From Entomortierella parvispora E1425 (lineage: Eukaryota > Fungi > Mortierellomycota), in NCBI GenBank assembly GCA_020891255.1, contig BQFW01000013.1, forward strand, positions 1,302,001 to 1,366,000: 64,000 nt of DNA, read 5' to 3'. The notes under the pieces were generated by a model that searched no databases, was not told the DNA's origin, and saw only the letters and a program-made list of their open reading frames with translations. This document shows, one piece after another, positions 1,129 to 63,393 of this stretch. Position 1 is the first letter of the stretch. Each line of letters begins with the position of its first letter. Position numbers and translations under genes: made by a program.

Positions 1129-4100
1129 TTACTCGTAGTCGCTCATGGGTGGGCAAGAGCAAACCAAGTTGCGATCACCATAGCTGTCATCGATGCGGGA
1201 GACAGTGGGGAAAAGCTTGAACTTGTGGAGGTAAGGCAAGGGGTAGGCGGCCTGGAGACGAGAGTAGGTCTTGTTCTTCCAGAACTCGTCATCCTTCATC
1301 AAGACAGCCAAGGTGTGGGGAGCGTTGTTGAGGACGTTGTCCTTCTGGGGCTGCTTTCCATCCTGGACGTCCTGAATCTCAGCACGGATAGCAATCATGG
1401 CATCGCAGAAGCGGTCAAGCTCTTCCTTGCCCTCAGATTCAGTGGGCTCAATCATGAGAGTGTTAGGCACGGGCCAAGACATGGTAGGCGAATGGAAGCC
1501 ATAATCCTGGAGACGCTTGGCAATATCAATAGCCTCGACACCGACAGAGCCGAAGGGACGGATGTCGATGATGAACTCGTGGGCGCACATGCCGTTCTCG
1601 TTGGTGAAGAGGACCTTGTAGTGCTTGCCAAGGCGGTGGGCCATGTAGTTGGCGTTCAAGAGAGCAATCTCAGTGGCGTTCTTGATTCCCTCACCTCCCA
1701 TCATCTTGACATAGGCCCAGGAGATGGGCAAGATCGAAGCCGATCCGTGGGGAGCAGCAGAGATGGGTCCAATGGCCTTCTCTCCTCCAGTCTTGAGGAC
1801 AGGATGGCCGGGAAGGTAAGGAGCCAAGTGAGACTTGACACCAATGGGTCCCATACCAGGTCCTCCACCTCCGTGAGGGATGCAGAAGGTCTTGTGCAAG
1901 TTCAAGTGGCAAACATCAGCGCCAATGTGGCCAGGAGAAGTCAATCCAATCTGGGCGTTCATGTTGGCACCGTCCATGTAAACCTGACCTCCGTTCGAGT
2001 GAATGATCTCGCAAGCATCAGAAACAGTGTCCTCGAACACACCAAAGGTCGAAGGATAGGTAACCATGAAGGCAGAGAGACGGTCAGAGTACTTGGCAGC
2101 CTTGGCCTTCAAGTCGGCAAGATCCAAGTTTCCGTTGGCCAAGCACTTGACAGGGACAACCTCCATGCCGGCCATGGCAGCGGAAGCAGGGTTGGTACCG
2201 TGAGCAGAGACAGGGATCAAGCAAACGTTACGCTTGCTGTCGCCACGACCCTCGTGGTAAGCACGAATGGTACGGAGACCAGCATACTCGCCCTGAGCAC
2301 CCGAGTTGGGCTGGAGCGAGACATCATCGAATCCAGTGATCTCGGCCAAGTCACGGCGGAGCTCCTTGAGCATGATTTGGTAACCCTCAGTCTGGTTATC
2401 GGGAGCGAAAGGGTGGATGTTTCCGAGCTCAGGCCAGGTGACGGGGATCATCTCCGTGGTGGCGTTCAACTTCATGGTGCAGGAACCGAGAGGGATCATG
2501 GAGTGAGTCAAAGAGAGATCCTTGTTCTGGAGGCGGTAGATGTAACGGAGCATCTCGGTCTCAGAATGGTAAGAGTTGAAGATCTTGTGGGTCAGGTAGT
2601 CCGAGGTACGGGTGAACTTCTCGCTCAACTTGGCGGGGCTAGTCTCGGAGATGTTGAGCTTCTGGGCAATGCTGAGAAGATCGGGAGTAGCGGCACCATC
2701 CTTGGTGAAGACCTTGATCAAGTTGTCAAGATCAGCCTTGTTGCAGGATTCGTCAAAGGTGACACCGACGGTCTCGGCATCGAACTGACGGACGTTGATT
2801 CCGGCAGCAAGAGCCTTCTTGACCAAGTTGTCGGCACCACCCTGGACCTTGATGGTCAAGGTATCAAAGAAGTGCTCGTTCTCCACCTTGTGGCCAGCCT
2901 CACGGACACCCTCGGCGAAAACGGCAGTCATGCTGTGGATACGCTCAGCAATTTGCTTGATGCCAGCAGGTCCGTGATAAACAGCGTAAAGAGCGGCCAT
3001 GTTGGCGAGGAGAGCCTGAGCTGTGCAAATGTTGGAGGTGGCCTTCTCACGACGAATGTGCTGCTCGCGAGTCTGGAGAGCAAGACGGAAGGCCTTGTTG
3101 CCCTGAGAGTCCTTGGAGACACCAACAAGCCGACCGGGCATTCTGCGCTTGTGCTCATCCTTGCAGGCAAAGAAAGCAGCGTGGGGACCACCATATCCCA
3201 GAGGAACACCGAAACGCTGGGAGTTTCCAAGGGCAATATCAGCACCCCACTCACCAGGAGGGGTCAACATGGTTAAGGCCATCAAATCAGTGGCAGCGAC
3301 AACCTGGGCACCGTATCCATGGATCTTCTCAGCAAAGCCCTTGTAGTCAGAGACGTTTCCGCGGGTGTCGGGATACTGTTTGAGGATGCAATTGGGGTTA
3401 GTTGTCGTCTCTTTGACTGTCACATGTATTGTTGACTTTTTTTTTCCGAGTTCTCCTTTTTTGCTCCCTTTGTGTCTCTGTGTTCACTGTGCTCACCTGG
3501 ATCAAAACACCAGCCATCTCGCCCTTGATAGACTCAAAGTCAAAGTCGCGGTGGTTTCCAACAACAACCTTGATGTTGAAAGCCTCAGCACGGGTCTGGA
3601 CGCAGGAGATGGTCTGAGGGTGGCAGTTCTCGTCAACGAAGAAAGTGCTCTTCTTGCGGTTGGTGGCGGACCAGCACATCAACATGGCCTCAGCAGCAGC
3701 AGTACCCTCATCCAAAAGCGAGGCATTGGCAATGGACATGCCAGTAAGATCCGTGACCATGGTCTGATAGTTAAGAAGGGACTCCAAACGACCCTGGGCG
3801 ATCTCGGGCTGGTAAGGAGTGTACTGGGTGTACCTGCGAATATTGTTCAATTGCAATGAGGTAAGTATTTCATGTCCAAGTGCTCGTTTTGAGAATGACG
3901 ATGATTGATGCTGAGCATGGTGAGCCAGAGAATCCTTCCGCCCCCTCGCGTTTTTTCTCTTCCTTCCTTTGGTCCAGGCTCTCCTGGCGATGTCGTGTCG
4001 TTCAGTCAACTCGGAATCGCCTACGAGCATCCTTGTCCGTGTCAGAGTGATGTAGTCTATCAACAAAGACCTTTGCGTGTGCCTTTTTCTTTCTTTTTTC

Positions 4101-8916: not shown

Positions 8917-10591
8917 ATGGACAAGAAGAACCAAAAGATGCCTCTCAAGTCGGCATTGAAGAAGACAAAGCCCGTCGAGACTGCCCCCGCTGCCTCGACG
9001 AAACGCAAACACTCTGCCGTCTCATCCGCGCCATCAGCCTCGACCAATGGAGCCAAGCGTGCCAAGCCCTCTGCCGCTGGCAACCAGAAGCCTCAGTCAA
9101 AGAACAACAACAATAACAAGAACACAAAGAATCAACAAAAACAAACCAACAACAACCAGAAGAAGAAGGGCGTGACCATCAGTGCTCCTCACAAGAAGGG
9201 AGCGTCTGTCACTTCGGGATCTGCCCCTGCCGCTGCAGCCAAGAAGGTTGTCAAGCCCAAGAAGGCTGAGGTCGTCCCTGAGGGAGCCTCGTTGGAAGAC
9301 TTTAGAATCGTTGCAGGAACATACGAGAACATCCTCTATGGTGTGGATGCTTACTGGAACGAGGTGAGCATTATGAGCGTTCATCAATTGACAAGGCACA
9401 AAGAGGCACATGGACTGCATTCGAAACATACTGATGTTGCATCGCATTTCCCTTTGTAGGATATGACCTTGAGACTGTCGCCTATTTTCATCTTTGCTGC
9501 CCATATCGGATGCATCAAGTCACTAGCAATCGGTGGAAACTTCTTGGCCTCAGGAAGCACAGACGAAAAGATCCAGTATGAATTTCGTCTCTTTGGAATT
9601 GCTTGTGTTGAATGGGAACCACCCTGTCTAACTGCCACTCACTCTATCTTATAGACTGTATGATCTCAAGCGCAGAAAGGAATTGGGAAACTTGCTTCAG
9701 CACCAGGGAACCATCACCTCGCTTACTTTCCACAACAAGACTCACATGCTCTCTGGATCTGATGACGGAAAAGTCTGTGTGTGGCGATCCAAGGATTGGG
9801 AGTGTCTCAAGAGCATGAAGGGTCACCAGGCTTCCGTCCACTCTATCGCTATTCACCCCTCGGGCAAAATTGCTCTCAGTGTCTCTGCGGATCATTCTGT
9901 TCGTCTCTGGAACTTGTTGTTGGGAAAGCAGGCCAGCATGACTCGTCTGCATGGTGAGGGCATGAAGGTCTGCTGGAACCCTAGCGGCACTGGATATGCA
10001 ATTCTGTTTGATCAGGAAGTTGGTATCTACGACATGGCAACAGCAAAATGTGTCCAGACGATCAAGCCAGCAAAGAAGACTCGCTTGAACTCGATGATCT
10101 ACTACAAGGATGAGTACTTGATTGTTGGATGCGAAGACAAGATGGTTCGCATCTACAAGACCGCCACTGGGGAGCTGGTCAAGACTTTGGCAGGACATGG
10201 AAACCGAATCAAGGATGTCGCTCTGGTCACTGTCCCCTACACCCCCGAGGAGACTTCAAACAAGGAATTTGTCGGCAAAGCCTCGACAAAAATGGTTGAT
10301 GTCCTCTCCAGTGTTTCTTCGGACGGCACCATTTTGCTTTGGAATATGGAGGATGTGATTGAGCATAAGGACTCTGAGGAGGAGAAGATCATGAAGAACC
10401 ACATTGGAGAGCACAAGACTGACATGCGTGTTACTTGCCTTGCTGTCCAAAAGGGTATCTGGAAGAATGTCAACTGCTCAGAGGCTGCCGGAGGAGCTGA
10501 AGATGATGAGGACAGTGAGGAAGAGGAGCTGGCCACTGCTGAGGCTTCAGCTTCGGAAGAGGATGAAGACGAAGAAGAGGATGACGAGTAA
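8917..10591 (+). CDS. MAK11: WD40 60S biogenesis factor (PAK1IP1/Mak11)
   Basis: IVAGTYENILYG, FAAHIGCIKSLA, LASGSTDEKI, several GH..WD-type repeats and an acidic tail; two introns near 9364-9459 and 9576-9653. Confidence 0.9.
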
Positions 10592-53528: not shown

Positions 53529-53973
53529 TTTTTTTTTCTTGTCAAAGGGTCCCTCACAGGTACGGGGTCTATTGCCTGTTAATTGTAAGTACACATACCC
53601 AGTGCGCCTGCTCCACCCAAGGGAAACGGACTAAATAAAATGCTTTTGCATTGCACGACCCGTCTATGACGGCCCTTGCACCCTGGTTTCATAACACCGC
53701 GGCCAAAGAGCGGGAGCTTCTAGCTTGCTACAGCAAGGCCAGGCCAGTCCCCTCTGTGTCCTTTCATGCTCGTTCGTCACTAGTTTCCGAGATCCTTTTC
53801 CAAGAAGAACTTCACTCCCCCCTGTTCTTTCCATGACGTTCAACACGCGCTTTCCTTGGTATTCTTCTAAGACATCTTTGTCCGCAGCCTTGTGGAGTCT
53901 CTTCATCCTTGTCGCATCAAACCTGTCCACCAAAGTAATGTTGCTACCTCCGTGTCCGTCAACACGGGTACCC
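53529..53973 (-). mobile_element. 5'-truncated non-LTR retroelement, family B, copy 1 (ORF end frameshifted)
   Basis: Poly(A) tail on the minus strand (T9 at 53529-53537); high similarity to 60603-61060; ORF remnant RMKRLHKAADKDVLEEYQGKRVLNVMERTGG. No clear TSD. Confidence 0.8.
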
Positions 53974-54011
53974 TTTTTTTTTTTTGCAGGGGACCGATCT
54001 GTGCGATAGAA

Positions 54012-54477
54012 TTTTTTTTTTTTTTTTGCAACATTTTATTTGCTATGTCGAGCCAAAGAAGTGAAGTGCGATACCAAACTATCTACAACCTGAGCAAAGC
54101 CGCGTGGTCCAGACGAACAAAGACCCCGGATCCCCACGCAACAAATGCCACGGCTCGTCACCGTGTAATAAAGAAGAGTAAAATGTTACAAAAAATGGAT
54201 CTTCCCCATCTTTTCTAATGTCGATAAATGAACCTGGCCACGCACACAAGCCAGTAAGCGCTGGTCGGCCAGCGTGGGATTGTCTTGGGCACCAGGGCAG
54301 AGGCCTTGATGGTGGTCGGTGTTAGGCTTTCCGCATTGGCAAGTGTCCGGTGGTAAGATCGTACCAGAGGCATTATTCCACGGTTGCCCAGTCTGGGCTT
54401 GCTTCTTCATCTTGGGGCGGATACCTTGTGTCTTCTCCCATGCAATAGTCACTTCGCAGCGCGTCTTCCAGAGCCGA
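54012..54477 (-). mobile_element. 5'-truncated non-LTR retroelement, family A, copy 1, with 20-bp TSD
   Basis: Poly(A) tail at 54012-54027; flanked by gaccgatc(t/c)gtgcgatagaa at 53992-54011 and 54478-54497. Open frame 54476-54186 (RLWKTRCEVTIAWEKTQGI...KIHFL*) begins at the truncation point. Confidence 0.88.
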
Positions 54478-54498
54478 GACCGATCCGTGCGATAGAAT

Positions 54499-54537
54499 CA
54501 CGTGATTAGTGGACATTGGTCTGTTGCCGGTCACGTG
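54499..54537. promoter_or_regulatory. Paired TCACGTG E-boxes (Cbf1-type) upstream of tRNA-Ala
   Basis: CACGTG at 54499-54504 (-94) and 54532-54537 (-61). Confidence 0.5.
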
Positions 54538-54592
54538 ATTTGTTGAGGTTTTCAGAATCCCAGATCCCTTCGGTTTTCGGAGATCTAGCTCT

Positions 54593-54665
54593 GGGGATGT
54601 AGCTCAAATGGTAGAGCGCTCGCTTAGCATGCGAGAGGCACTGGGATCGATGCCCAGCTTCTCCA
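54593..54665 (+). tRNA. tRNA-Ala(AGC)
   Basis: GGGGATGTAGCTCAAATGGTAGAGCG-CTCGC TT AGC AT GCGAG-AGGCA-CTGGG ATCGATG CCCAG-CTTCTCCA; G3:U70 identity pair; T-run terminator downstream. Confidence 0.97.
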
Positions 54666-56122
54666 ATAGAGACCTTCTTTTTGTCTTTTTGCGGTCTTTT
54701 TGGCCCCGGAATGCGCTTTTTAAGCTGGTTGTGGAAAATGTTGGTAAAGAATCGACCAGGAGCAAGGTTGCACTGGCAACCTGTCACCCTTTTGCGGTCT
54801 CGATGAAATAAAGTCGTGTGAACCTATCTTTTTTTTTTTTTTTGGCTATTGGACAATGCGCGCTTCCGTCGATCACCAAAAAAAAGCGCGTTCCCAGTCC
54901 GTATGCCCAAATCACGATCTTGGCTTGGGTTCCTGCTTGACCAGGGGCGTGTCCCCTGTTCACCTCCTTGTGCCTGCTCACTTCATATCATGCGGACGTG
55001 AGGGAGTGTGCATAGTTGAAAACAAAACGAGGGTTTTTTAGCCTCGTTCTCATTCTGCAAAGAAAGAAGGAAAAAAAGAAAAGAAAAAAAAATGAGATGT
55101 TTGAGAGCTATGACGAGAGTGGCTCGGTGGAGCTTAATGTTTTCATGGATCCTCTTGTCTGGGAATCAGAATGCCGAAATAGATAAGCCTCCCTCGAGGT
55201 CCCTGTCTTTGAGATGCGGGTCACTACAAAGAGGCAACAGAACAGGTACGAGGAAAATACATAATCAAAAAAAAGTCGAAAAAAGTCAACAGCGATGTGT
55301 TGCACTCGTGGTTCCTGTGAAAAATCGGCGCAATCCTGCAGTTCTCTCTTTTTTTTTTTGACGGGAATGGTTGTGGAACACACAGCAAAGAAAGACCTCC
55401 GCAAACTGGTGCAAGGGGGTGACTGGATGGATGGATGAATGCTTCTTTTCTTGTACCTTTTGCATACAAAACGAGGGGGGAAGGTTGCTTGACTGCTTGG
55501 CAGCACGGAATGAATGATTCGAATCTTGACCCCCTTCGTTGACACGCGCGAGCATTGCGAGAGAACGCATGGTTCCTGGGCTGGATCCTGGTCTCAAGTT
55601 TGCTGGCAATGTTCCCTTTTTCTATAAACTTTACGCAAGGGAGTCATTGCACGCTCTGCCTGAGTGTGGATCCAGACCTGGGGAGTCAGGGTGGCAACAG
55701 CATTGACGACAATGCAAGGTGCAAGGGAGAGCCAGCACAAAGCAGCAGCACCGCAGTCGTTGCGCTGACTCCGATGGGTCTTTGACAAGAAGGCGATGCC
55801 CTCATCAAAGCAGTACAGTAGCGGGAAGAACGTTCCTTCTGTCTGTTTGCTTGTCTGAATGAAATGCAGGATCCCTTTGTATGCTTGCAAGCTTCCCCCT
55901 TTTGTAATGCTTTTCCCTTCTTCTCTCTCCTCCTTTCGTTATCTCTCTTCCCTCTTCCTCTTCCTCTCTCTCTCTTTCTCTTTCTCTTTCTCTCTTCTTC
56001 CCCCCGCATCCACCCATCCTGCCCCAACGACATCACTCCTCCCCTCGACCCTCTCTCTCCATCAGCCCCAACACTTTATCCTCTGCTTTCCAAGATATCA
56101 ACCACATCAGCAGCAATCACCC

Positions 56123-57592
56123 ATGCTTCGAAACGCACACGGATACTTCCCTGTCACTCTACCAACAGAGCCGCCTCTGCCCGCGAAGGATTCACCGCAG
56201 CCCATGACGATGGAGGCCAACAACAAAGGATCGCCTATGCAGCAACAGCAGCCTCAATATTACAACAACAACAACAACAACAACAACAACAGCAGCAACA
56301 ACACTGATATGACCAGCAAGTCCTCATCCCTCGGCGCTGCCGTCACAGCAAGAAGCTCGCCCATCATTGACAGCAGCAGTAGTAACAGCAGTGCCGGCAC
56401 AGGGCCAACGAACAACCACACAACCCAAGAGACCCAAGGAGGTAATAATGGTTACCATCAGGGCTTCAACAACGGTAACAGTGGCGGACGACAACGCGTT
56501 GTTAATGGGGAGAGCGCCACCGGTAATATTACCGGTGGTGGCCGAGACTCACCCATGGAGGGTATCCGGCGCGGATCGCTCATTGAATCCGCCGTGGCCG
56601 CCACTGCGATCGCTCGAGGCTCTCCTCCCATGATGGAGATCAATAGGGGATCGCCCTTTGATAACCCGAGCGGCTTAGTGAGAGGAGCTTCCAACGAGGC
56701 TAGATCGCCTTTCGAAGAGTTCAAGCAGCACCAGCATCAACAGCAGCCACATAAACCAACCTCTCCCTTTGAACAGCTACAAGAGTTGCAGTTAAAGCTT
56801 ATGGAGCAGCAGCAGCAGCAACTTCAACAGCAGAAGCAACAACAGATGCAACAGCAGCAACAACAACTCCCCCCTCAAGCTGTTGCCAGAGTGCCTCCAG
56901 GTGCTGACAACAACAGCAACAACAGCAACAATAACAACAGGCCAATGCAGAATGAACAAGGGCGGGGTTCTCCTGTGCAAGCCAAGAGCGGCAACAATGG
57001 CACAGTGGTGACCAGCAATGCAGGCGGGAGCGCAAACGGGAGCGGGAACAACCACAAGGCAACTCCTTTCGAGAACTATCATGCAAAAGGCTCCCCTGTT
57101 GTGGACGTGCACCAAGGCTCGCCCTTTGACAACACTAAGGTTTCACCCTTCGGGATTGCCCGAGGATCACCATTCGATGCTCCTCGTGGTCCGTTCTTTG
57201 AACCTGTCGTCCGAGTGTCACCAGGAGGCGAGAACATCCAGCTCAACAACTTTCAACAGCATCAGCACCAGCACCAGCAACACCAGCAACATCAGCAGCA
57301 GATGCAACAACAACTGCAGTTACAGAACAACCCCAATATCAATAGAGGTGGTTCCCCTGTTGAGGTGAAGAGACAGTCGCCGACCGAAGCGAGCGCGCAA
57401 TTGGCACGGGTGCAGCAAGCTCAGTTTGAATCGCCCATCGTGCAACAACCACACCAGCAAAAGCATGCGGTACAGCCCTATCTACAACCCCCAGTTCAAC
57501 ATCAGCAGTACCAGCAACACCAGCAACCACAGCAGCAGCCGCAGCAGCAACCGCAACAACACCAGCAACAGCAACAGCAACCGCAACAACAC

Positions 57593-57623
<31 letters not shown>

Positions 57624-57634
57624 CGCAACAACAC

Positions 57635-57679
<45 letters not shown>

Positions 57680-60201
57680 TACTTCCATCAACATCAGCAA
57701 CCGCAGCAGCAAGGTCAACAGCCGTTGCAACCCCAGATTTTCCAGCAACAGCAAGCTATGCAGCTGGTGCCTATCCATCCTCCACAGGGATTTGTGCAGC
57801 ACCGACCTGCTCAGCTGCAGATAGCGGCTCTGCATGAACAATCGCCAACAGTGGACCGAATCTCCCCCTTGTTGCAGCGTCAGCCATCAATCCCTAATGT
57901 CGCTCAGGGTTTCCAGACAATTGAGCGCCATGTAGACGAACGACTTGAAAACGAAACAGAAGAGACCTTGAACCAACGCATCAAGGCTGACATTGTGGTT
58001 ATGTGCCAGGAGCGAGGTACGCTGCAGCATTCTCCCACTTACTTTATTTTGCTGGGGACATGGAAGTGTTTTTTTTTTATGTCATCATACACCAGGTGCC
58101 CTTCCGCCATTTTTTTGGGGAGAAGGGAATGAGGTCTTCGATTTTGTACATTGTTGTCCCGCATCCTATCCCGTGTGTGATACGTACCCTTCTGTGGCCA
58201 TCCATCCCTTTGTCTCTCCCGCGCTTTTCGTTCTCCCGCTTTTGCAATTTTTGACGTGGCGCAAAATCGCATGCAAGCGCGCGCAACTGCATGCTTGCAT
58301 GAAACACAACGACGCTTCTTCGCTTGGAAACTCCCCAAACTGACACAGAACTTGTACCACTCTCTTTTTCCTGCCTTTGGTTACCATTTCATGCCTCCCC
58401 TGCAACTCTATCTTTCGCGCTCTCGTTCCTTGATACTTCTCTTGTCACCTCCTTCGGCCCCTCTTTCTACATTTTTCGCCTCTTCGCACTTCATTCTCCG
58501 TCGCTCTTCTTCATTTGTGGCATTCTTTTTTTGGTGTTCAATATATTAGGTCTACCTGCTGAAGGCGAAAAGAAAGCTTTGATTCAGGCACTTCTGGATT
58601 GGGTAAGTTGTCCAATAGTTGAAGCAAGCGAACAAAGCATTGATTCTCCTGTCACGCATAATAATGTTCTTTTGCTTTACGATATAGCAACAAGCTAAGC
58701 CTGTGCCAGGTCCGTCAACCCCTAAGCTCTGTTCAATGGAGCCAGCGATGGTGGCGAAGAAGGCTCCAGTCAATACGATATACCTGAACTCTTTGTTGGC
58801 AGACGAAAACTTTCAGGGGGAGATCGCCTATGATCAGCTAACTGTTGGGCGCAAGCTGGGATCTGGAGGATTCAAGGACTGCTATGCTGGAGTTTATTTA
58901 GGTGTAAGTATCAGGATTGACGGAACGACTCACGTTTGTTCATATTCTAACAGGGGCTTGCACGTTCATTTGTAGGAACCGGTCGCTATTGGCGAGTTAC
59001 GAGTTCAGAACTTTACAGAGATGGATATTGCAGAAATGAAACACGAAATCAACGTATTGAAGTAAGTCTCTCGCTACTTTACACAATCCTCAAAACTTAT
59101 GAACTCACCAATTGTATTTTACCGGTACTTTTTCTTTGGGTTGGCTCGATAGGCAACTTCGCCACGAGAACATCATCCGGTTCATTGGTGTATGCACCAA
59201 CATCAAGCATCTCTGTATAGTTACAGGTATGAGACCTCGAGGAGAATGCCAGAATGACAAGAACGTCAAAATGTATTTTGTTACTAACATAAACAACGAT
59301 CACTAGAGCTTTGTGAAAACGGCGACCTTTACGACTTCATGCGAAAGAGCAAGAGACCTACATTTGGTCGAATGGTAGCTGCCCTAATTCAGATTCGTTT
59401 GCATTGCGACCTCTCACACTATGTACTGGATCTAATGAAAAGATGAATTTTAGATCATGTACATGCACGACATTGCTCTGGCCTGCTCATACCTCCACAC
59501 TCGTCGCCCAAGTATCATCCACAGAGTAAGGGCTATAGCTTTTATACTATGACACATTGCTTGTCTGTGTTGTAACGCCTACTAACCGCTTCACCTTTTA
59601 CTCCTATAGGATATGAAGTCCATGAATGTTTTGGTGAGTTACAGAAAGAGGCTTACTTTTTTTTTTTTTTTGACGCGCTTTTGTTTAACACAGTTTTCTC
59701 GTTGATTGGATTAGATATCTGCGGATGATCGTGCCAAGATTAATGACTTTGGACTGGCACGTATTCGACCTGGGGCTAGGGCTTCTCTTCACACACAGTG
59801 TGGAACGCCCAATTGGCAAGGTAAAAATCCTGCAGCGTGTCCTTTTTCTCGGATATTCAAACGTCGACTCGAAACTCAACCTATCTTATCTTTACCATTT
59901 CCTAGCCCCCGAGTTTTGGACGCCGAATCCCAGCTATACCGAGAAAGTGGATGTATATGCTTGCGGCTTGATCTACTGGGAGATTCTGTCTTGGGCAGAG
60001 CTTGGATACCCTTACCACAATTTAACAGAGCACCAGCTGTACGAAGCAGTGCGCGACAAGGAGGAAAGACCACCACTGGAAAAATTGAAGAAGTACCCGC
60101 AGTCACTCATCTCTTTGATACAGGATATGTGGCGAAAGGATCCAAAGAAGCGCCCATCGATGTCGCATGTTGTCGATCGTTTGGCTGAATACTTGGAGTA
60201 G
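56123..60201 (+). CDS. TKL-like protein kinase with polyQ/polyN N-terminus and SAP domain; atypical lysine placement
   Basis: Multi-exon. SAP-like LNQRIKADIVVMCQERG|LPAEGEKKALIQALLDW; LGSGGFKDCY, VAIGEL, HRDMKSMNVL, DFG, GTPNWQAPE, RPSM. Confidence 0.92.
57513..57678 (+). repeat. CAG/CAA trinucleotide (polyQ) tract with higher-order QQQQQPQQH units
   Basis: Directly visible inside the first kinase exon. Confidence 0.95.
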
Positions 60202-60491
60202 ATATCGGGAGCGAAATACAAGGAATCTCAAATTTTTGGTGCCGCTGTTAGCCGAATCGATACGCTCAACCCTTCTGATTCCAAGGGGGGGTTTTTTTTT
60301 GTGCTTCTTCGACATATTCTATCTCCTCGCCTCTGTAATGAATTTCTTGTAGAGTTCATCCAAAAAGAAAATAAAGAAAGTGATGAACAGCCACTGTTCG
60401 ATAGAGAATTCGAAGCTGTAGTGAAGATGAAGGCCGTTCGTTGGTAATCATAGTCTCCCTCTCGACATTAGGTAATGGGTTACACCCTTAA

Positions 60492-60570
60492 TTTTTTTTT
60501 TTTTTTTTTTGCAACATTTTATTTGCAAAGAAGCGATACCAAACTATCTACAACCTGAGCAAAGCCGCGT

Positions 60571-60602
<32 letters not shown>

Positions 60603-61138
60603 CTTATCAAAGGGTCCCTCGCAGGTACGGGGTTTATTGTCTGTTAATTGTAAGTACACATACGCAGGTGCGCCTGCTCCACCCAAGGGAAACGAACTAA
60701 ATAAAATGCTTTTGCATTTTTTGCATTGCACAACCCGTCTATGACGACCCATGCACCCTGGTTTCGTAACACCGCGACCAAAGGGCGGGAGCTTCTGGCT
60801 TGCTACAGCAAGGCCAGGTCCAGTCCCCTCTGTGGCCTTTCATGCTCGTTCGTCACTAGTTTCCGAGATCCTTTTCCAAGAAGTACTTCACTCCCCCTGT
60901 TCTTTGCATGACGTTCAACACGCGCTTTCCTTGGTATTCATCTAAGACATCTTTGTCCGCAGCCTTGTGGAGTCTCTTCATCCTTGTCACATCAAACCTG
61001 TCCCGGTTAAAGTTACCAAAGTTACTGTTGCTACCTCCGTGTCCGCCAGCACGGGTACCCGGTTCCTCAGGCCTGGTACGTTTGCTCACACCAGTAACTC
61101 CGAAGCCGCGTGGTCCAGACGAACAAAGACCCCGGATC
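60492..61138 (-). mobile_element. Composite: short family A retroelement (9-10 bp TSD) interrupted by family B copy 2
   Basis: T19, then A-type 3' end (60511-60572), with A resuming at 61114-61138; outer TSD cacccttaa at 60483-60491 and 61139-61147. Confidence 0.88.
60573..61102 (-). mobile_element. 5'-truncated non-LTR retroelement, family B, copy 2, nested in A with an 11-bp TSD
   Basis: T30 tail at 60573-60602; TSD aagccgcgtgg at 60562-60572 and 61103-61113; ORF end ...AADKDVLDEYQGKRVLNVMQRTGGVKYFLEKDLGN*. Confidence 0.88.
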
Positions 61139-61156
61139 CACCCTTAATCATTGAAT

Positions 61157-61182
61157 CACGTGGTGTCTTTTGATATCACGTG
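61157..61182. promoter_or_regulatory. Paired TCACGTG E-boxes upstream of tRNA-Arg
   Basis: CACGTG at 61157-61162 (-94) and 61177-61182 (-74). Confidence 0.5.
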
Positions 61183-61250
61183 ATGTGACAACCTCTGCAA
61201 GTTGATCCAGCCAATTCAAAACATTTCCAACCAATGAGGTCGCAGCAAAT

Positions 61251-61322
61251 GGGCTTGTAGGATAATGGATAGTCCCCTAGACTTCGAATCTAGTAATCCG
61301 AGTTCGATCCTCGGCAAGCTCA
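61251..61322 (+). tRNA. tRNA-Arg(TCG)
   Basis: Acceptor GGGCTTG/CAAGCTC, D arm GGAT-AATGGATA-GTCC, anticodon arm CTAGA CT TCG AA TCTAG, T arm CCGAG TTCGATC CTCGG; T-run downstream. Confidence 0.93.
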
Positions 61323-63393
61323 ACAATTAATTTTGATTTTTTTTTCTTCGACGGAGTGGGGTGATGTTGAATCCACTGGACGCTCGGAGGCAGCTCTGAT
61401 CCATTACTGCGCTTCCTGCCCGTTCTTTAGTGGACGACATCCTTTTGGGAGGTCTAATCGTCAACCTCCATCTCTTTAACTAACGACTTTCTAACCTCCT
61501 TCTTATCTGCTGAATGGTGATCAGGCTATCCAGCGTCAAGATCTGCGGAACCAGCAGGCAATCGTTGAGTGGATGCGAATGGCTGGCGATTATGGGAGAG
61601 TTGGTTATTAAAAAGATATCGAAGTCGACCACACGGCCCATCTTAAAAGAGTTCCTGTATGGGTGGTCGCGGTCAGCCATCAACTAATGAACAGCGCCAG
61701 TCTGTCCAAACACAACACAATTGATGATCTGATGATCTTGAACCGTTATTTTGTGGTGCACCTTTTTGGACTTTGGAGTTGTGCCTCGACCATCAGTCCT
61801 CGTCGAAAGCTTTGTTTTTTTTCGCGCAGTCGTTCACTGACGGCAATTCATTCAAGCGACACGGATCTCTTGGCGAATGTGTTTTGGCAACAGACAGTGA
61901 GAACGCTGCTAAAACACACACAGAGGAATCACTCCACTCTCTGCGTTCAAAAAAACTTCAGAGGTGTTTTGCGTCGGTCAAAAGTGCCATGCCATAACGT
62001 GGCATGGGCTGACCTCTGCAGTATTTGTTTGTCCTCTACACGGACAAAAGAGAGACAAACGACTCCCAACAGAGACACGGTCAAAAAATAAGGATCTGAT
62101 AAGAAAACAAAGGGCCAAGTACCCTGTGAATTTTTTTTTTTTTTTGTTTTTCCTTTTCTTCTTTTGTCGGTGACCCAAAATATCCGACCCAACGACAGGG
62201 GCGCACTTTTTTGTGGGCGAGAAAAAAAAGTGACTTATCAGATCCGAGTCAGATTGTTCACACCGGCCCCCCAGGTCCAAAAAAAAATGCTCTGGACCCC
62301 CACCAAGTCCGTATCCTTTCTTCATAACAAAGCACATTTGCTAGACAAGTGTCAGCACGAATCACCGCTTTAAGAAAAAAAAAAAAAGAAAAAAGGAAAG
62401 AGTGAAAGAAGCCTTGGTTCGGAGCCACTGACAGGAAGACAGAAAAGTGGTGTGTGAGTAACGGCAGTCGTAAGGCTCTCACATGTGGGAATGACAGGTC
62501 TGGAATGACCTTCCGAGTGGGGCCATTTTTATTATTTTTTTTCCTCTACCTGTTCCACTTCACGGGACCGACCTAATAATATAAAAGAGTTTTCCGAAGG
62601 TGGGATGAACTCAATGCATTGTGCCAGTCAGAAAGTAAAACGGCCGAGATCGAGGAGCAAATCCCGAAGGATTGGCCATTGCGGGCTGTCAGGCAGGCTC
62701 GGGGAAACCAGAGTCTTTCTGTCCTACGATTGTCTTCTCGCTCTCTCTAGGTCATGGTTCGGGGGGAGACATACTGGAGACGAGTCTTTCTGATGTGTCT
62801 CTCAGACCGTAATCACGCCTGTTGTTATCAGATCCAAAGTCATAACGGGAGACCCTCTGCGATTTGGGTGTCACTCGAAGGCAATGGAGGATCAAAGAGG
62901 GAGGGGGACAAAGACAGAGAGAGAAAGCAGGAGAGAGACAGGAGGAGGGGGGAGCTAGGTGAATAGTGATGTTCGTTGTGCGCTACTTGCCCCCGATAGA
63001 CGAGCCGAGTCAGCCAAAAGGGCTGACTGACTGACAAAAGAGACAATGGCTGGCTTCGTATCCCGTCCCGGGTCAGGCGGGGATCTGATAAGATTTTGTT
63101 TGTCATTTATCTCTTTTTCCTCCTCTTCCTTCTTCCGCCCTCCCTCCCTCACTTTCGTTGCTGCCTCTTTGTTTTCTGGCGGTTCGTCTCTTCTCAATCC
63201 TTCCGCACTCTCCTCTCTCCTTCACCCTTCTGTCTCTTCGCCTTGTCTGTTGAATCTCGCCTTTCATTCCTTCTCTCCATTGCTCATCTCTCCCTCCGCC
63301 CACCAGCCTACTGTTCCTCCACCAAAAGAAAACAGAAAATTGCTCCTTCCGGCAAATCCCTTTCACTTTCAACACAGCACACACTCATACGCC

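Follow-up and report, generated by a model that had tools for sequence, protein, structure and literature searches.

Two families of non-LTR retrotransposons, designated A and B, were found upstream of tRNA genes throughout the genome of the soil fungus Entomortierella parvispora E1425 (Mortierellomycotina), in a single orientation, at family-specific distances and regardless of the target sequence. Their integration is very probably positioned by something assembled on RNA polymerase III (Pol III) genes, including tRNA genes, a 5S gene and tRNA-like pseudogenes with A and B boxes, and not by the local sequence. Target choice by LINEs has been worked out for elements that recognise a specific sequence and, among protein-guided ones, for a single case, TRE5-A of Dictyostelium. 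The analysis started from a 64,000-nt stretch of contig BQFW01000013.1 (hereafter the window), in which four retroelement fragments had been noticed next to tRNA genes.

ARAGORN identified exactly two tRNA genes in the window, the same number as in the original prediction. BLAST searches with the full-length elements returned only the B1, A1, A2 and B2 sites, all on the minus strand, in agreement with the claim that these repeats occur nowhere else in the window. The fragments had been described as poly(A)-tailed and 5'-truncated; indeed, all four end in poly(A), visible as T runs on the plus strand, and lack 5' sequence present in longer genomic copies elsewhere. The target-site duplications proposed for A1, A2 and B2 were re-read at coordinates that matched within 1-2 nt. 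The features of the two loci, in order of position, were as follows:

53529-53973, minus strand: B1, a 5'-truncated family B copy (3' end and short poly(A)), 93% identity to B positions 2877-3335
53974-53988, minus strand: T run and 'gca' between B1 and the A1 duplication, read from the sequence
53993-54011, no strand: A1 target-site duplication, distal copy (accgatc[c/t]gtgcgatagaa at both junctions)
54012-54478, minus strand: A1, a 467-bp 5'-truncated family A copy, 98% identity to full-length A positions 9324-9791
54479-54497, no strand: A1 target-site duplication, proximal copy, at -113..-95 of tRNA-Ala (19 nt, one mismatch)
54499-54504 and 54532-54537, no strand: two TCACGTGA boxes, at -93 and -60 of tRNA-Ala
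54592-54666, plus strand: tRNA-Ala(AGC), targeted Pol III gene (ARAGORN)
60483-60491, no strand: A2 target-site duplication cacccttaa, distal copy (sequence reading)
60492-60572, minus strand: 3' part of A2, comprising poly(A) and 3' UTR and lacking 29 nt internally; identical (100%) to A positions 9695-9730 and 9760-9794
60562-60572 and 61103-61113, no strand: B2 duplication aagccgcgtgg (11 nt), the latter copy at -147..-137 of tRNA-Arg
60573-61102, minus strand: B2, a B copy of 530 bp, 5'-truncated and ending in 30 nt of poly(A), sitting inside A2 and splitting it in two
61103-61138, minus strand: 5' part of A2, 97% identity to A positions 9669-9706
61139-61147, no strand: A2 target-site duplication cacccttaa, proximal copy, at -111..-103 of tRNA-Arg
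61157-61162 and 61177-61182, no strand: two CACGTG boxes, at -93 and -73 of tRNA-Arg
61250-61324, plus strand: tRNA-Arg(TCG), targeted Pol III gene (ARAGORN)

In the stack upstream of tRNA-Ala, B1 is the outer and older copy, and inspection of its junctions revealed no clear target-site duplication. The T run and trinucleotide at 53974-53988 are probably a further A-family insertion cut back almost to its poly(A) tail; similar tails of 6-30 nt were present at the corresponding position in front of other tRNA genes. In A1, the final 94 ORF2 codons are followed by the 3' UTR and poly(A), and a tblastn comparison gave 100% identity to ORF2 residues 2268-2361. The TCACGTGA box seen at this locus is a lineage-specific upstream element that is frequent at the tRNA genes of the E. 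parvispora genome.

The window repeats represent the 3' ends of autonomous APE-type non-LTR retrotransposons from two families that are only distantly related to each other. The full-length A copy (C2:3481291-3491093) is 9803 bp long and is flanked by a 19-bp target-site duplication, with both ORFs open. The full-length B copy, of approximately 8.2 kb (C2:2886769-2902641), is flanked by a 20-bp duplication at -148..-129 of tRNA-Gly. The original prediction called for reverse transcriptase (RT) and endonuclease in full-length copies, and APE endonuclease, RT, RNase H and ORF1 were all found to be encoded. The 2361-codon ORF2 of A matched the Pfam families Exo_endo_phos (E = 3.9e-8), RVT_1 (E = 7.4e-15) and RNase_H (E = 9e-13), while its ORF1 contains RRM_1 (23.4 bits versus a cut-off of 20.7) and one CCHC knuckle (CFQCGSHEHRRADGC). 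The ORF2 of B aligned to that of A over the endonuclease and RT, and the two ORF1 proteins are homologous; identity between the families was 52% in the RT core and approximately 30% elsewhere. Among solved structures, the nearest to A ORF2 were human LINE-1 ORF2p (E = 2e-19) and the L1 endonuclease, the PDB offering L1 and R2 only, and no relative of A ORF1 was found. Neither terminal repeats nor a Pfam integrase domain were present in A when looked for, and its 3' end is poly(A). Across the genome, the point of truncation differs copy by copy, the tails are poly(A) and the target-site duplications measure 9-21 bp. The 5' end of A is single copy genome-wide, and copies 99-100% identical to full-length A were found at different tRNA genes, a sign of recent activity. 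In the one RNA-like run inspected (as contigs), the neighbouring spliced gene was covered and the single-copy 5' 1.9 kb of full-length A was not, which is not evidence of silence. A had also been considered as a short SINE-like element, as many hits span the whole 466-bp query; this reading was dropped because the copies continue 5' with common sequence.

The association with tRNA genes was evaluated from both sides. In the element-centred test, the flanks of 60 insertion loci of A and B were sampled; the set leaves out C2:3406039, C11:419969, several internal fragments and five matches to the 3' end of A that are nearly identical to one another (74%). Bona fide tRNA genes were present at 33 of these loci and a 5S rRNA gene at one. 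Approximately 0.02 such loci are expected by chance, given the 192 nuclear tRNAs of E. parvispora (PMC8759367), and the binomial tail was ~1e-89. In the tRNA-centred test, the upstream region from -105 to -160 was checked for A or B in the 59 top-scoring nuclear tRNA genes, of which 13 were occupied (binomial tail ~1e-37). The genome-wide counts exclude chance. The predicted enrichment and orientation bias near tRNA genes were both borne out, with at least 33 tRNA genes (from at least 13 amino-acid families) and one 5S gene occupied, and with all scored junctions (32/32) antisense, the element 5' end toward the gene. The 5S case is a single A-like copy, antisense and 92 nt from the gene. A further ten loci comprised five tRNA-like pseudogenes that retain A and B boxes, three LTR-split sites and two sites with a tRNA gene at 298 or 758 nt. 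At the examined loci, no copy lay on the downstream side of a tRNA gene or in sense orientation to one.

The remaining 16 of the 60 loci had no tRNA gene, Rfam hit or B box in the readable flank. Rfam searches of 17 loci without a tRNA gene, at the gathering threshold and at E <= 1, returned nothing, and a rescan of short flanks yielded the one 5S gene; relaxed ARAGORN thresholds at tRNA-less loci gave mostly junk calls. Two of the 16 (C15:1927239 and C11:701859) are young copies with clean duplications. Thus, either the targeting is not absolute or some of the targets were not recognised.

The distance to the gene depended on the family. Median spacings were 113 nt (A) and 148 nt (B), a difference with a Mann-Whitney p = 5e-4, within an overall range of 101-187 nt over the scored junctions, and the insertion window of each family was approximately 30 nt wide. 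At C9:249765, tandem copies have one common duplication, that is, the identical nick site was reused. The sequences of the target-site duplications are unrelated among loci, and B2 entered the sequence of A2 at the usual B distance; hence, it is position and not sequence that is recognised.

The geometry of the insertions suggests how integration could proceed. The elements would be tethered by TFIIIB, TFIIIC, Pol III or a nucleosome positioned by these. The endonuclease would then nick the tRNA-sense strand upstream of the mature tRNA 5' end, at a distance of ~90-115 nt for A and ~130-140 nt for B. Reverse transcription, starting from the poly(A) tail of the element, would be primed at this nick, and a second nick would be made 9-21 nt farther upstream. 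Such nicking and priming would leave the element antisense, with its usually truncated 5' end toward the gene. Head-to-tail stacks, with the younger copies closest to the gene, would build up as one site is used again and again.

An alternative is that the elements are tethered to a factor binding the TCACGTGA box, or to the chromatin that this factor creates, in which case the Pol III machinery itself would not be targeted and the link to tRNA genes would be indirect. The 57 tRNA upstream regions contained 56 occurrences of CACGTG, all of them within -120..-33, beside the insertion zone, and the box was present in 10/13 occupied versus 20/44 unoccupied tRNA genes (Fisher p = 0.06). Nevertheless, CACGTG is missing from the targeted 5S gene and from at least seven targeted tRNA genes (C12:1679396, C5:1749192, C9:661109, C2:3182108, C7:712303, C13:623353 and C5:653120). 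Moreover, insertions lie anywhere from 0 to ~50 nt from the nearest box, whereas their spacing to the tRNA gene is tight, and no insertion was present at seven further CACGTG sites in the window. We consider tethering by a box-binding factor unlikely.

It is very improbable that the elements insert at random and that purifying selection spares only copies that happen to lie harmlessly upstream of tRNA genes. The genome is gene-dense, with 11,641 CDS in 38.7 Mb (PMC8759367), and the 16 loci away from Pol III genes would fit this explanation. However, selection does not account for a window of ~30 nt per family, for the uniform orientation or for two family-specific distances, and the reuse of a nick site at C9:249765, the lack of downstream or sense copies and the 99-100% identity of many tRNA-associated copies also speak against it. 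Least probable of all is an endonuclease that reads a DNA motif happening to sit upstream of tRNA genes, as in elements of the R1, R2 or Tx1 type: a TTGGTGGCG motif lies in or beside several target-site duplications, but it is missing at some targets, no consensus emerged among the duplicated sequences and their flanks, B2 went into A2 sequence, and the spacing is unchanged at the 5S gene and the tRNA-like pseudogenes.

The likeness to the TRE5 elements drawn in the original prediction is apt; these, too, are APE-type LINEs found upstream of tRNA genes. TRE5-A (as well as TRE5-B/C and NLTR-B) resembles A and B in having two ORFs and an oligo(A) tail and in inserting upstream of tRNA genes whatever the tRNA family. 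TRE5 elements also form tandems at one site and hit 5S genes (PMC5391098, PMC5911963), the latter represented here by one case. Both hosts combine a compact genome with a tRNA-targeting Ty3/gypsy element, DGLT-A there and LTR repeat 'X' here. In contrast, the TRE5 host is an amoebozoan and that of A and B a fungus of the Mortierellomycotina, and the spacing of TRE5 is 40-54 bp (PMC5911963, PMC5391098), as compared with ~95-115 nt for A and 130-150 nt for B. The ORF2 of the TRE5/L1 clade holds APE and RT only (PMC5911963, PMC5391098), whereas that of A adds RNase H over its 2361 codons. ORF1 of TRE5-A is unlike other ORF1 proteins (PMC5391098), while that of A and B has an RRM and a CCHC knuckle.

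Among fungal elements, Ty1 of Saccharomyces cerevisiae (also Ty2 and Ty4) likewise inserts upstream of Pol III genes, at distances that overlap -90..-150. It integrates beyond the TFIIIB footprint, from ~80 bp upstream, guided by AC40, a subunit of Pol III, and by upstream nucleosomes (PMC7459421, PMC5911963). Ty1 has LTRs and an integrase, and its window reaches to ~1 kb upstream with nucleosomal periodicity, whereas A and B are poly(A) LINEs that use target-primed reverse transcription and enter a narrow window in one fixed orientation. Ty3, Tj1 and the Yarrowia elements Tyl3, Ylt1 and Tyl6 are also fungal retroelements steered by the Pol III machinery; unlike A and B, they carry LTRs and an integrase and integrate only a few bp from the transcription start. 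In a 2018 review, the tRNA-targeting non-LTR elements came from dictyostelids only and the fungal targeters were LTR elements only (PMC5911963). Our literature searches found no earlier fungal description, and the published LINE examples they returned were all from social amoebae. The fungal RNase H-bearing (Tad1-like) LINEs share with A the fungal host and an ORF2 composed of APE, RT and RNase H, and the position of RNase H C-terminal to RT in A is the order expected for the Tad1 clade, as judged by domain order only. To our knowledge, and in the literature searched, Pol III targeting has not been reported for these elements.

Two protein searches returned only unnamed or Mucoromycota proteins, the nearest named ones being LINEs of Linnemannia, Rhizophagus and Geosiphon. 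The one Linnemannia elongata relative inspected, a truncated and frameshifted copy with a 16-bp duplication, had no tRNA gene within 25 kb. A metagenome scan for relatives gave short or unrelated contigs without tRNA genes. Contigs with the closest ORF2 relative (P0002) extend over only 81-142 nt of 5' flank, and the canonical arrangement was seen in none; one of them holds, in sense orientation, a sequence that includes a B box. The E. parvispora genome itself contains a third LINE family, E, which displayed no tRNA association.

On balance, and with moderate confidence, we favour the view that an RNase H-bearing fungal LINE lineage gained Pol III-complex-guided integration independently of the dictyostelid TREs, giving two deeply diverged families with different rulers (~-113 and ~-148) that use tRNA genes together with a Ty3-like element at -15..-33. 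If so, these would be the first fungal LINEs shown to target tRNA genes, differing from TRE5 in kingdom, protein architecture and the presence of two distinct spacings. A second, apparently independent case would show that Pol III safe-site targeting evolves repeatedly in LINEs and not just in LTR elements. It would also provide another, independent system for studying how transcription complexes are read by the machinery of target-primed reverse transcription, in a fungal host that can be cultured and whose genome is finished, with A and B serving as natural 'ruler' variants for mapping the targeting domain. The TCACGTGA element and the co-resident Ty3-like element would add a compact model of competition among mobile elements for the same safe sites. 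That co-resident element, the Ty3-like LTR repeat 'X', abutted 5 of the 59 tRNA genes.

Annotation with ARAGORN yielded exactly two tRNA genes in the window, in agreement with the original prediction. Reading of the sequence, together with alignment of the full-length elements to the window, placed four copies of two LINE (non-LTR retrotransposon) families, A and B, upstream of these genes:

53529-53973, minus strand, B1
54012-54478, minus strand, A1
54592-54666, plus strand, tRNA-Ala(AGC)
60492-60572 and 61103-61138, minus strand, A2, split by B2
60573-61102, minus strand, B2, sitting inside A2
61250-61324, plus strand, tRNA-Arg(TCG)

The alignment revealed no further A or B copies in the 64 kb, as originally observed. 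The target-site duplications lay at -113 to -95 (A1), -111 to -103 (A2) and -147 to -137 (B2) from tRNA +1, within 1-2 nt of the earlier figures.

Across the genome, at least 47 matches were found for A and at least 46 for B. Most of the copies extended 5' beyond those in the window, and the truncation point differed from copy to copy. The 5' end of A occurred only once; the full-length A (nuclear contig C2:3481291-3491093) spanned 9803 bp, with a 19-bp duplication. Its ORF1 (748 codons, counted from the first Met) encoded an RRM and a CCHC knuckle, while the 2361-codon open frame of ORF2 contained the Exo_endo_phos, RVT_1 and RNase_H domains, with human LINE-1 ORF2p as the closest solved structure. 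The sole RT-bearing B copy (C2:2886769-2902641, 20-bp duplication) carried, nested in its ORF2, a 7.66-kb LTR retrotransposon (C2:2893798-2901454; sequence pieces L149, L150 and L034) with 165-bp LTRs and a pol ORF on the minus strand, so that B proper is approximately 8.2 kb. The two families shared no DNA similarity apart from the poly(A) tail, and their protein identity was 52% in the RT core versus approximately 28-36% elsewhere. The ORF and domain content and the structure of the full-length elements show that both are non-LTR retrotransposons of the autonomous type. Full-length copies thus carry RT and endonuclease, as the original proposal requires.

For the element-centred test, fetched loci were merged into islands, long copies were extended by a short 5' flank, and elements and tRNA genes were annotated by BLAST and ARAGORN, respectively. 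The resulting 60 independent loci were distributed as follows:

33 loci: bona fide tRNA gene, with the element in antisense and its 5' junction 101-187 nt from tRNA +1 (two of them very short tails)
1 locus: 5S rRNA gene, A-like copy at 92 nt, same geometry
5 loci: tRNA-like pseudogene with A and B boxes kept (Rfam tRNA only 16.4 bits), the full-length A among them
3 loci: LTR-like repeat X separating the LINE from the place where a tRNA gene would be expected
2 loci: more distant tRNA gene (298 or 758 nt)
16 loci: flank read without any Pol III feature

The 5S rRNA gene (L069:93-213, C16:100404-100524) scored 64.8 bits in Rfam, and the 5' end of the A-like LINE faced it in antisense. One arrangement, comprising an A copy, a B fragment and flank, was present near contig ends in opposite orientations (C6:13369-18415 and C14:2239200-2244263); it is a segmental duplication, probably subtelomeric, and was counted as one locus. 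Given the 192 nuclear tRNA genes and 38.66 Mb of the E. parvispora genome (19 nuclear contigs; PMC8759367), the probability of a random insertion falling in an oriented 120-nt window was 3e-4. For a conservative count of 30 out of 58 loci, this corresponded to a chance expectation of 0.017 loci and a binomial tail of approximately 1e-89. The genome-wide enrichment near tRNA genes in one orientation, as originally proposed, was confirmed by the 33 loci found against this expectation. With 16 of the 60 loci located elsewhere, the elements do not target such genes exclusively.

The tRNA-centred test covered the 59 best-scoring nuclear tRNA genes of an Rfam search, picked regardless of repeats, with 360 nt of upstream sequence read for each. 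A or B was present at -105 to -160 in 13 of these genes, always antisense, compared with approximately 0.01 insertions expected by chance; in four of the 13, just tails of 6-30 nt plus poly(A) were left. The proposed targeting of tRNA genes by fungal LINEs is thus strongly supported (33/60 loci, 13/59 tRNA genes, 32/32 junctions in the same orientation), and we regard Pol III-gene-directed integration by these elements as real.

Orientation was identical in all the scored junctions. The spacing had a median of 113 nt for A (interquartile range 109-125, n = 17) and 148 nt for B (interquartile range 137-151, n = 15), a significant difference (Mann-Whitney p = 5e-4). The duplicated target sequences (9-21 nt) were mutually unrelated, B2 had inserted within A2 sequence at the usual B distance, and the spacing at the 5S gene and tRNA-like pseudogenes was the same as elsewhere. 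At C9:249765, successive A copies had one common duplication, and therefore a single nick site was reused. These observations show that position relative to the Pol III gene is read, not a DNA motif. For antisense elements with the poly(A) tail on the side away from the gene, target-primed reverse transcription would start from a nick in the tRNA-sense strand, at the edge of the duplication closer to the gene, and the second nick would fall farther upstream.

In 57 upstream regions of 360 nt (L079-L131 and earlier loci), all 56 occurrences of CACGTG lay between -120 and -33, and the core was preceded by T in 48 and followed by A in 48 of them. At least one TCACGTGA box was found in 30 of the 57 tRNA genes (two in 17, three in four), frequently with a TTGGTGGCG motif close by. 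Within the window, TCACGTGA boxes were located at 54499-54537 and 61157-61182, upstream of the two tRNA genes. No literature linking CACGTG with tRNA upstream regions was found; TCACGTGA may represent an upstream component of Pol III promoters that is specific to this lineage. Tethering of the elements by a CACGTG-box factor would be in line with the confinement of the boxes to this interval, but it is unlikely, because the targeted 5S gene lacked the box, as did at least seven of the targeted tRNA genes, the insertion-to-box distance varied from 0 to approximately 50 nt, and seven other boxes in the window had no insertion. Survival by selection alone does not explain the narrow windows specific to each family, the uniform orientation, the nick-site reuse or the youth of many copies.

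Directed integration at Pol III genes has been described for TRE5-A of Dictyostelium, which inserts upstream of tRNA genes at a distance of approximately 48 bp, its 5' end toward the gene, forms tandems, also targets 5S genes and is thought to use contacts of its ORF1 protein with TFIIIB (PMC5391098, PMC5911963). A and B behave like TRE5 but differ from it in size, in spacing, in the type of ORF1, in the presence of RNase H and in the kingdom of the host. The non-LTR tRNA-targeters listed in a 2018 review are all from dictyostelids, and those listed from fungi are all LTR elements (PMC5911963). We found no report of a fungal LINE near tRNA genes in a full-text collection that includes few subscription journals and not Repbase Reports. 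Conservation beyond this genome drew no support from the one Linnemannia relative or from the metagenomic relatives, and contig-level RNA data showed no transcript of the full-length A.

Several other elements were noted in the genome. Repeat X, which is bounded by TGTCGTGACTCTC... and ...GAGAGTCACGACA, terminated at -15 to -33 upstream of five other tRNA genes of the 59 (L086, L113, L117, L128 and L130), and the three loci where it separates a LINE from the expected tRNA site were L020, L025 and L039. This pattern suggests that, in the same genome, the Pol III start site is targeted in the manner of Ty3. A small family of tRNA-like pseudogenes, missed by ARAGORN and scoring only 16.4 bits against Rfam tRNA, had its A box intact and its B box perfect. 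It was found at L066:2013-2074 (C2:3491206-3491267) and in six or more further places in the genome, and the only full-length A copy lies upstream of one member. A B-box-containing sequence of approximately 100 nt, starting GGGCGGGCGAGCC and without an Rfam match, was found in L029 (C16:95249-98631, around 700-900) and L141:1-100. It is conserved between E. parvispora and a related fungus, known here from a metagenomic contig, and in both it adjoins A-type LINE ends in a non-canonical geometry. A third LINE family, E, was represented by two full-length copies (L146, C1:514745-521200; L148, C11:1440128-1446500), 98.7% identical and with a common 5' end, whose RT was 46% identical to that of A. 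No tRNA gene or Rfam match was found upstream of either copy, and Pol III targeting is thus not common to all LINEs of this genome. Five nearly identical matches of approximately 397 bp (C11:855432, C4:2822681, C4:677162, C2:1604099 and C1:1810727) resembled the 3' end of A at 74% identity and may represent either an additional subfamily or a derivative that is non-autonomous.
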